64,000 bases of DNA, taken from NCBI GenBank assembly GCA_965603825.1, contig CBFDEM010000005.1:310001-374000 (forward strand). Direction: 5' to 3'. The DNA is from Blepharisma stoltei ATCC 30299. Lineage: Eukaryota; Protista; Ciliophora. The notes beneath the pieces were generated by a model. The model had not been told where the DNA came from. It ran no database searches and was given only the letters and a program-made list of their open reading frames with translations. Shown one piece after another: positions 15,127 to 16,885 of this stretch; positions within the stretch are counted from its first letter, which is position 1, and every line of letters begins with the position of its first letter. The position numbers and the translations under genes were made by a program.

Positions 15127-16885
15127 ATGGAGCGTACTTCAATAGACAACGAACTTAATAGTACTCGTGACGAAGAAGACGAAGACCTTTCAAGTCTGAT
15201 TCACTCTTATCCAAACAACAAAAATGAGGTAGTCGAAGTGTCTCCTAAAGGAAGATTTTTTAGAGTAAATTTTTACATAGTTTAATGATCTCTTAGGATC
15301 TGGAGCCTATAAAACTGTATATCGAGGGCTGGACAATGACCAAGGGTGTGAAGTTGCCTGAAACAGTATCAGTGTTAAAAATCTACCTGCTGAAGATAGA
15401 GCTCAAATAGCCGAAGAAGTCAAATTAAATAGGAGACTTAATCATCCTAATATTGTTCATTTCATATCAGCCTGGACAAATCCTAATAAAGAAGAGCTCG
15501 TCTTCATTTCTGAGATCGTCACTGGAGGATCACTACGACAATACTTAAAGAAGATAAAATTTCCAAGGTTAAAAGTAATCAAAAGCTGATGCAAAGGAAT
15601 TCTCCAAGGTCTGCAGTATTTGCACTCACAAAAGCCTTGACCGATAATACACAGAGATCTGAAATGTGATAATATTTTCATCATGTCTAACACAGGAGAT
15701 ATAAAAATCGGAGATTTTGGTTTATCTACAATCATGAGAAGCAAATTGCATACATCAGTATTAGGAACTCCAGAATATATGGCACCTGAGGTCTACGAAG
15801 GCAGCTATGATACGAAAGTCGATATTTTTTCGTTCGGAATGTGCGTCTTAGAAATGTGCACACTTTCAGCACCTTATAAAGAGTGCAAAACCCCGGCAGC
15901 CGTCTATCGAAAAGTTATGTCACGAATTATGCCTGAATCCTTGAAAAAAATTCAAGACGACGAAGTCAAAAAGTTTATTACACTATGCTTGGAAACAGCT
16001 GATAAGAGGCCAGCTGCAAGCGAGCTCTTAAATCACTCATTTTTAGTAATAGATGAAGAAGACCCTAGAGTGCATCAAGCTGTTCTGCTTGCTAATGAAA
16101 ATGACGAAGTCTTGCAAAATCTTCAAAATAACTTAATTTTGGCAGGAAATATTGCAAATGAGCCAGAGAAGAACCTTGTAGAAAGCTCTTTGATAATCAA
16201 AGACAACAGAGGAGCACTTAGACAGGTGACTTTTCAATTTGATTTAAATTCAGACACACCTGAAAAAGTGGCCGAAGAAATGGTTAGAGATCTTGATCTT
16301 GATCCAGCCTTAGCCATCCCTATTGCAAATGAAATTGAAATTCTAGTATTTTCAAACACAAATTCTAAAAATTTATGCTCAGAATGTTATTTTAAAGAAA
16401 AAAATTGCCCAGAAAAAAATGAGGATATATGTAAGCATGTCAACAATCGAGCTCCTATATATAGCAATAGAAAAGTTTCGATATCGGCTCCAGAAGATGT
16501 TAGGATTAGCCAGAATTCTTTAGAAAAAGAACAATCCGAACACACATTAGATGATTTATTACAATTAGATAATACAGATTTTAATATTTATAGCAAAGAA
16601 TTACCACCGATCAATGAAGAAGTCCAGCGACCTTTTAGAGGGGCAATAAGAAAAAGATCAAAAATAGGAAACGACAAAGAAAACGTGATGCTATTGCAAC
16701 AAGCGCTGTCAGCAGTACTCCGAACACGAATAAAAATGGACGGATTTTACGGAGAAAAATGCGAAAATCAAGTCAAGAAATTTCAAGACAAAATTGGATT
16801 AGAACCAAATGGTATCGTCTCAGAAGAATTATGAAATAGATTAATGCTTGAATATAGTAAAGTATGCGAAGAAGATTCAGATTAA
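15127..16885 (+). CDS. WNK: WNK-family kinase + CCT-like domain + C-terminal peptidoglycan-binding-like domain
   Basis: ATG 15127 and a 16-nt intron 15265-15280. GSGAYKTVY (WNK Lys in beta2), EVAW(TGA)N, KSW(TGA)C, IIHRDLKCDNIF, GTPEYMAPE. Reads through TGA 16832-16834 to TAA 16883-16885. Confidence 0.9.

Follow-up and report, generated by a model that had tools for sequence, protein, structure and literature searches.

A bacterial/phage-type PG_binding_1 domain at the C-terminus of WNK-type kinases in Blepharisma stoltei and other heterotrich ciliates

The gene described here occupies positions 15127-16885 on the forward strand of a 64,000-nucleotide stretch of DNA (the window) from Blepharisma stoltei ATCC 30299 (GenBank assembly GCA_965603825.1, contig CBFDEM010000005.1, positions 310,001-374,000). 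It has two exons and a predicted product of 580 amino acids. As judged by profile matches and motifs, the kinase belongs to the WNK family and is adjoined C-terminally by an autoinhibitory/CCT-like domain, and the protein ends in a domain that, by its sequence matches, is a genuine PG_binding_1 (PF01471) peptidoglycan-binding domain (PGBD) of the bacterial or phage type, not of the matrix metalloprotease (MMP) type. The same fusion is found in five paralogues in the genome, and sequence comparison shows domain and kinase retained together among heterotrich ciliates. An earlier note on this DNA had proposed that the protein senses bacteria, coupling peptidoglycan to WNK signalling, and had named a repurposed interaction module as the alternative; the latter is at least as likely, and a cytosolic regulatory or assembly role for the domain is tentatively favoured here.

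Domain searches were run separately on the pieces between TGA codons, and the spliced 580-codon reading, with X at each TGA, was used for hydropathy and the motif count only. The sequences quoted in the earlier note were found at the positions it had given for them. PF01471, for which the Pfam gathering cut-off is 23 bits, matched at 35.1 bits in a 397-aa piece and at 38.8 bits in the last 78 aa, both matches ending before the final TGA and lacking the last helix. A six-frame reading through TGA raised the score to 40.7 bits over profile positions 3-57. The PG_binding_1 tail recognised in the earlier note is thus borne out both without the last helix (35-39 bits) and with it. A family profile (A1) made from 33 WNK-attached domains gave 93 bits at 16664-16855, and the WNK-attached domains of relatives scored 26-48 bits against PF01471.

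When the family profile was compared with PDB chains, phiKZ gp144 came first (E 1.9e-10), and CtpB was found at 1.9e-5; further matches were a C. difficile peptidoglycan-binding protein, SleC, a Streptomyces DD-peptidase and L,D-transpeptidases. No MMP chain was matched at E<=1. Membership of the MMP propeptide family was rejected on this ground and for want of the cysteine-switch PRCGxPD together with a metalloprotease domain; the PRCGxPD of the pro-MMP-2 propeptide was not seen in the C-terminal sequence of the WNK protein. The three-helix bundle was seen in the fold of a paralogue's domain, not that of the window gene; this paralogue fold compared best with AP3 endolysin (9.7; 1.4 A over 60), SleB (9.5) and gp144 (9.3), as against 6.5 for the MMP-2 propeptide and no more than 2.5 for unrelated chains.

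Type-1 PGBDs are described as containing two DGxxGxxTxxxPho repeats, and the residues critical in ExeA are quoted as Phe487 and Thr503 (PMC12547810); binding by ExeA has been reviewed (PMC4098917). In the WNK-attached domains, the first repeat is largely kept and the second is degenerate. Repeat 1 of the window gene reads DGFYGEKCENQV, with Cys in place of Thr, and repeat 2 reads NGIVSEELWNRL. Across the 33 WNK-attached domains, the D, G, G and T of repeat 1 are found in 28, 32, 22 and 18, respectively, and in repeat 2 Gly5 is found in 1/33 and Thr8, the equivalent of ExeA Thr503, in 3/33. The aromatic residue of the FQ motif, equivalent to ExeA Phe487, is invariant as F/Y. Helix 2 carries residues specific to the family, Lys13 in 33/33 and Glu9 in 29/33.

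The domain passes the Pfam threshold in the same way as the PGBDs of phiKZ gp144, the AP3 endolysin of a Burkholderia phage, SleB/SleC, SltB2/SltB3, the Streptomyces Zn DD-peptidase 1LBU and ExeA/EpsAB, and, like those of cell-wall enzymes, retains the aromatic residue of FQ and DGxxGxxT repeat 1. It differs from them in being eukaryotic, cytosolic and borne on a kinase instead of a murein-active enzyme, and in the loss of Gly5 and Thr8 from repeat 2 of the WNK-attached domains, alongside an invariant Lys and a conserved Glu of its own on helix 2. The usual setting of PG_binding_1, an extracytoplasmic, murein-active enzyme, was not found, the remaining domains being the kinase, the CCT-like domain and a sub-threshold zf-A20 match.

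A profile search for the source of the domain returned 51,909 proteins at E<=0.001, and the best 150 were all multi-repeat PGBD proteins. As these rank by their summed multi-repeat score, no donor lineage can be named. A tblastn search of phage genomes with the PGBD gave nothing at E<=1e-3, and a region-restricted word search with it returned a paralogue as the only match.

The B. stoltei genome sequence (41.46 Mb, 64 contigs) includes five matches to PF01471, all of them at the C-termini of WNK paralogues (contigs 5, 21, 51, 56 and 60). The more sensitive profile A1 recovered the same five loci and none further at E<=1. Since 5/5 of the genomic matches lie at WNK C-termini, chance is excluded. 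The existence of a five-member heterotrich family makes the feature more robust, and less specific to the window gene, than the earlier note had it. A WNK-type CCT-like domain was found at nine loci, five of which include a PGBD; those without one are C18:100472-100660, C2:316182-316367, C57:236309-236479 and C36:970555-970725. Among the B. stoltei paralogues are proteins annotated as WNK4_5, WNK4_7 and WNK4_8. Secondary loss is suggested by P0048, a B. stoltei WNK that lacks the PGBD and yet groups with P0032, an environmental protein that has one.

Synonymous sites between the paralogues are saturated (pS 0.7-0.9), while the amino-acid identity of the PGBD is 42-83%. Because of this saturation dN/dS was mostly not computable, and pN was instead compared with pS, and the identity of the PGBD with that of the linker preceding it. 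Between distant paralogues the linker is 14-22% identical, as against 42-47% for the PGBD. These comparisons demonstrate purifying selection on the PGBD. No Amidase_2/PGRP (PF01510) locus was found genome-wide. LysM (PF01476) was found at four loci, one of which (C5:379003-379131) lies ~5 kb past the end of the window.

The features of the gene are as follows.

15127-15264, forward strand: exon 1, with the ATG at 15127 and an acidic N-terminus of 46 aa that ends with SPKGRFFR, leading into the kinase domain.
15265-15280, forward strand: intron of 16 nt, GT..AG, of heterotrich type, at a site conserved in relatives.
15281-16885, forward strand: exon 2, with the TAA stop at 16883-16885.
15281-16045, forward strand: WNK-type kinase domain, assigned from Pkinase matches and motifs, with in-frame TGA at 15359, 15587 and 15638.
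16166-16348, forward strand: WNK autoinhibitory/CCT-like (PF2-like) domain, assigned from OSR1_C, CCTL2_WNK and family profile A2.
16349-16663, forward strand: poorly conserved linker, with a Cys motif at 16376-16438 and, immediately ahead of the PGBD, the basic sequence RKRS.
16664-16855, forward strand: PG_binding_1 (PF01471) three-helix domain, assigned from Pfam and family profile A1, with the TGA=Trp of the last helix at 16832-16834.
16856-16885, forward strand: short acidic C-terminal tail and stop, by sequence reading, EEDSD being the last residues ahead of TAA.

The window is AT-rich (GC ~0.29-0.39 in 2-kb windows), and excision of the 16-nt intron restores the reading frame. The macronuclear genome of B. 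stoltei consists of 64 telomere-to-telomere contigs, has introns mostly of 15/16 bp, and reads UGA as Trp (PMC9942806). In the 580-codon reading there are four in-frame TGA codons (15359-61, 15587-89, 15638-40 and 16832-34) and a single TGG. Three of the four TGA codons align with Trp of homologues (EVA-W-N, KS-W-CKG and EEL-W-N), and paralogues have TGG at these positions, including that in the last helix. The remaining one, third in order along the gene (15638-40), aligns with Tyr (QKP-Y-PIIHRDLK) in all paralogues, Stentor and environmental relatives, and with Asn in Climacostomum. The final 17 codons, which include the Trp and the rest of the last helix of the PGBD, require TGA=Trp, as the earlier note had pointed out, and its reading of this codon agrees with both the TGG of the paralogue and the published code. 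From the kinase through the PGBD, however, positions 15641-16831 form one unbroken open reading frame (ORF) of 397 aa, and the fusion is hence independent of splicing. In the closest paralogue, L003, a TGA stands at the homologous stop codon and is followed by AAT TTT AGT TAA (L003:1705-1719). The public annotation of L003 includes a four-residue W-N-F-S extension from that TGA; this site could show whether Blepharisma sometimes uses UGA as a stop.

The 580-aa reading shows neither a signal peptide nor a transmembrane (TM) helix: averaged over 19 residues, Kyte-Doolittle hydropathy peaks at 1.34, and the N-terminus is acidic, not hydrophobic. The protein therefore looks soluble and apparently cytosolic, in line with the location proposed in the earlier note.

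PF00069 and PF01471 occur together in ~40 of the best 120 homologue clusters, and the architecture was seen in ~30 environmental clusters. The named carriers of the fusion are B. stoltei, B. japonicum (MMETSP1395 transcripts), Climacostomum virens (MMETSP1397, complete ORF) and Stentor coeruleus (SteCoe_25049), all of which are heterotrichs. The homologue search thus places this architecture in Blepharisma, Climacostomum and Stentor; other bacterivorous ciliates were not searched directly. Expression of the fusion rests on the transcript-derived proteins of B. japonicum and Climacostomum, that is, on other paralogues. The fusion is already visible in public databases through automatic Pfam annotation.

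The absence of the domain from plant and animal WNKs, also claimed in the earlier note, holds among the homologues listed, where PF01471 is carried by 0 of ~70 plant WNKs, and among the large WNK/OSR1 clusters of the ESM Atlas (Chordata, Chlorophyta, Oomycota and Mucoromycota), none of which includes PF01471. No ESM Atlas cluster of at least 50 members combines Pkinase with PG_binding_1.

Five environmental contigs were examined, and four of them (L006, L010, L011 and L012) have a 15/16-nt intron of heterotrich type at the intron site of the window gene. In three the intron is of 15 nt and lies exactly after GRFxR; L012 has an intron of 16 nt, a GC content of 30% and TGA=Trp. Prokaryotic gene callers cut the WNK-PGBD genes of L006 (2870-2890), L010, L011 and L012 at TGA codons or at the intron that follows GRFxR. 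P0039, on contig L008, is the member that diverges most; it has neither the shared tiny intron nor TGA=Trp, its GC content is 40%, and the sole match in a region search with it was to itself. Contig L008 is eukaryotic and extremely gene-dense, with intergenic gaps of ~8-20 nt.

In a maximum-likelihood tree from a quick search, with SH-aLRT support only, the PGBD-bearing WNKs occupy the entire non-plant clade, apart from several entries that seem to have lost the domain or to be truncated. This pattern fits a single fusion older than the divergence of the paralogues and genera, and we infer one gain of the PGBD, from bacteria or phage, prior to the separation of the heterotrich families and of the WNK paralogues.

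The assignment of the kinase is based on Pkinase matches to two pieces, at 1.5e-28 (the 397-aa piece, 15641-16831) and 5.1e-9, and on the hallmarks of WNKs. By motif reading, the catalytic Lys is relocated to strand beta-2 (GSGAYKTVYRG), and HRDLKCDN and IGDFG are present. The beta-3 Lys is absent, EVA-W(TGA)-NSI standing in place of VAIK (compare 'VAWCE' of WNKs), and the same holds for the paralogues, Stentor and Climacostomum. OSR1_C, with a cut-off of 22.4, scored below it on the 397-aa piece (21.2 bits) and above it on a 96-aa excerpt (23.9 bits), and CCTL2_WNK gave 21-24 bits on the pieces, under its cut-off of 27. Profile A2, built on the CCT-like blocks of 22 relatives, matched the structures of WNK3 (5O2C, 2e-9), the WNK1 autoinhibitory domain (AID; 2LRU, 1.2e-7) and WNK2 (6ELM, 1.4e-7). 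The nearest named full-length homologues are WNKs, and outside ciliates these are plant WNK4/5/8/9/11. The WNK kinase and CCT-like block reported in the earlier note are accordingly well founded.

Like the animal and plant WNKs (WNK1-4 and those of Arabidopsis), the Blepharisma protein has the beta-2 Lys (GxGxxK) and no beta-3 Lys, and includes HRDLKCDN, an activation-loop Ser and a CCT-like domain after the kinase; unlike them, it terminates in a PF01471 domain. It further differs from the animal proteins in being short (580 aa), without a coiled-coil or a long disordered C-terminus, and in having DFG instead of DLG. A search of its 580 aa for RF.[VI] gave no match to RFx[V/I], the SPAK/OSR1-docking motif typical of animal WNKs; this motif is not defining for plant and protist WNKs. 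In IGDFGLS (~15710-15730), Phe occupies what we take to be the position of the Leu (DLG) that forms part of the inhibitory chloride site of human WNK1. DFG was seen in the window gene, L003, L005 and Stentor, and DLG in L001, L002 and the relatives P0028 and P0039. Judging by these residues, chloride sensing may not be alike in all groups of paralogues.

The linker includes the Cys motif C-x2-C-x7-C-x7-C-x-H (16376-16438), for which the zf-A20 match is sub-threshold (E 0.03-0.08). The Cys pattern is preserved in paralogue L003 and is a candidate small zinc knuckle. Directly ahead of the PGBD lies the basic sequence R-K-R-S (~16643-16657), the counterparts of which are RKRT in L003, RRGS in L005 and RRSS in Stentor; at this boundary it looks like a phosphorylation site of a basophilic kinase. 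A second WNK-PGBD subfamily (L001, L002, P0028, P0039 and P0044) has a PFSSGN-x-SPI motif 60-100 residues ahead of the PGBD, and this motif is not present in the subfamily of the window gene.

What the PGBD does for the kinase can be read in several ways. We tentatively prefer the interpretation that the three-helix bundle was repurposed for regulation or assembly inside the cytosol. It would associate with another protein, with itself or with the kinase/CCT-like unit, and such binding would govern the localisation, oligomerisation or autoinhibition of this short WNK; the domain would then no longer recognise polymeric cell wall. The family-wide degeneracy of repeat 2 and the new conserved charged residues on helix 2 speak in favour of co-option. 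In addition, with no signal peptide or TM helix, the PGBD is not where murein sacculi normally occur. There is precedent in that the same fold serves as the dimerisation domain of CtpB and the inhibitory propeptide of MMP-2, 'despite distinct function' (PMC3808539), though the domain of CtpB differs from that of the WNK protein in having four helices and belonging to a secreted protease.

Several points weigh against co-option. The top sequence match of the PGBD is a peptidoglycan binder, phiKZ gp144, with MMP unmatched at the threshold given above, and the domain keeps repeat 1 as well as the FQ-motif aromatic (F/Y). The second repeat is likewise degenerate in P. aeruginosa SltB2, which is a peptidoglycan enzyme (PMC12547810), so that degeneracy is no proof of lost binding. 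As ciliates digest bacteria and can host cytoplasmic ones, cytosolic muropeptides are plausible ligands. Moreover, the partner, dimer interface or docking site that a co-opted module would need is hypothetical.

The proposal of the earlier note, in which the PGBD is a cytosolic muropeptide or peptidoglycan sensor that binds wall fragments from food vacuoles or cytoplasmic bacteria, is possible, if on the improbable side. Binding would recruit or activate the WNK, and the physiology of ions, volume or vacuoles would thereby respond to bacterial load. The sequence of the domain is canonical for PG_binding_1, and its best PDB match is the PGBD of phiKZ gp144, which binds the cell wall with high affinity. 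The conservation of repeat 1 and of the aromatic equivalent to Phe487, the strong purifying selection on the PGBD, and its standing as the sole PGBD type in a genome in which PGRP/Amidase_2 was not found are all consistent with such a sensor. Kinases fused to cell-wall-binding domains have evolved before, as in the bacterial PASTA kinases and the plant LysM receptor kinases.

Against this stand the absence of the Gly and of the Thr equivalent to ExeA Thr503 from repeat 2 in nearly all members, and the cytosolic location of the domain. Among named organisms the fusion has been seen in heterotrichs alone, with the limit on the ciliates searched noted above, and retention of the PGBD on five paralogues would suit a structural or regulatory role equally well. 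As the nearest sequence relatives are true peptidoglycan binders and repeat 2 of SltB2 is degenerate, this interpretation nevertheless stays in play. The more specific proposition, that the heterotrich PGBD-WNK would be a muropeptide receptor kinase switched by wall fragments of prey or of cytoplasmic bacteria, we regard as unlikely.

In the PASTA kinases (PknB/PrkC), the LysM receptor kinases and NOD1/NOD2, recognition of peptidoglycan by one module feeds into a signalling output, as it would in the sensor just described. The PASTA and LysM modules are extracellular, on membrane proteins; the PASTA, LysM and LRR binding folds are unrelated to the PGBD, and the kinases and NACHT of these systems are unrelated too. 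By Pfam, neither NACHT nor LRR was found in the pieces, the only matches being to Pkinase, OSR1_C/CCTL2_WNK, PG_binding_1 and, below threshold, zf-A20. Homology to the NOD, PASTA or LysM systems was rejected, the folds and modules being unrelated, and any likeness to NOD-like sensors would be functional, not homologous.

It is quite unlikely, on present evidence, that the PGBD binds some other intracellular ligand, small or polymeric, for instance an endogenous glycan or amino-sugar, a peptide that is short or contains D-amino acids, or a component of membranes, and in this way targets the kinase to an organelle, for example the food vacuole or contractile vacuole. The charged surface of helix 2 and the altered repeat 2 do suggest changed specificity, not decay, and a terminal domain on a flexible linker is typical of targeting modules, but the sequence points to no candidate ligand and no documented use of PF01471 for ligands of this kind was found.

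Finally, although the last 17 codons depend on TGA=Trp, it is highly improbable that the fusion arose from bacterial DNA chimerically assembled with the gene or from a wrongly joined gene model, or that the domain is functionless and decaying, given the continuous ORF from the kinase into a PGBD that itself uses the ciliate code, the Trp encoded by TGG in paralogues, the fusion-bearing transcript-derived proteins of B. japonicum and Climacostomum, and the purifying selection on the PGBD, with chimera and decaying relic ruled out by five dispersed paralogues in a telomere-to-telomere assembly, among which pS is saturated at a PGBD identity of 42-83%.

Full-text searches turned up no description of a peptidoglycan-binding domain on a WNK or on any other ciliate kinase. 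The Stentor kinome preprint, which counted 10 WNKs and listed novel kinase architectures, leaves the PGBD unmentioned, and a 2026 Stentor genome preprint mentions neither WNK nor peptidoglycan. Work on WNK kinases treats them as sensors of chloride and potassium, of osmotic pressure and of crowding, and no report was found of a WNK that bears a dedicated bacterial-type ligand-binding domain. RNA interference (RNAi) is established in Stentor, so a sensing role is testable there, and the small recombinant domain is suited to examining either outcome.

The retention of the PGBD on five paralogues and across heterotrich genera, over a time in which synonymous sites became saturated, indicates that it does something for the kinase. 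If muropeptides are bound, the protein would be a cytosolic bacterial-sensing kinase in protists that links feeding or symbiosis to ion homeostasis. As a muropeptide receptor it would be the first ligand-gated WNK, and an independent case of intracellular peptidoglycan sensing, which would have made use of a module gained horizontally from bacteria or phage. If the domain has instead been co-opted for dimerisation or autoinhibition, the PGBD fold would have been re-used independently for a third time, and the case would shed light on the regulation of short non-animal WNKs.

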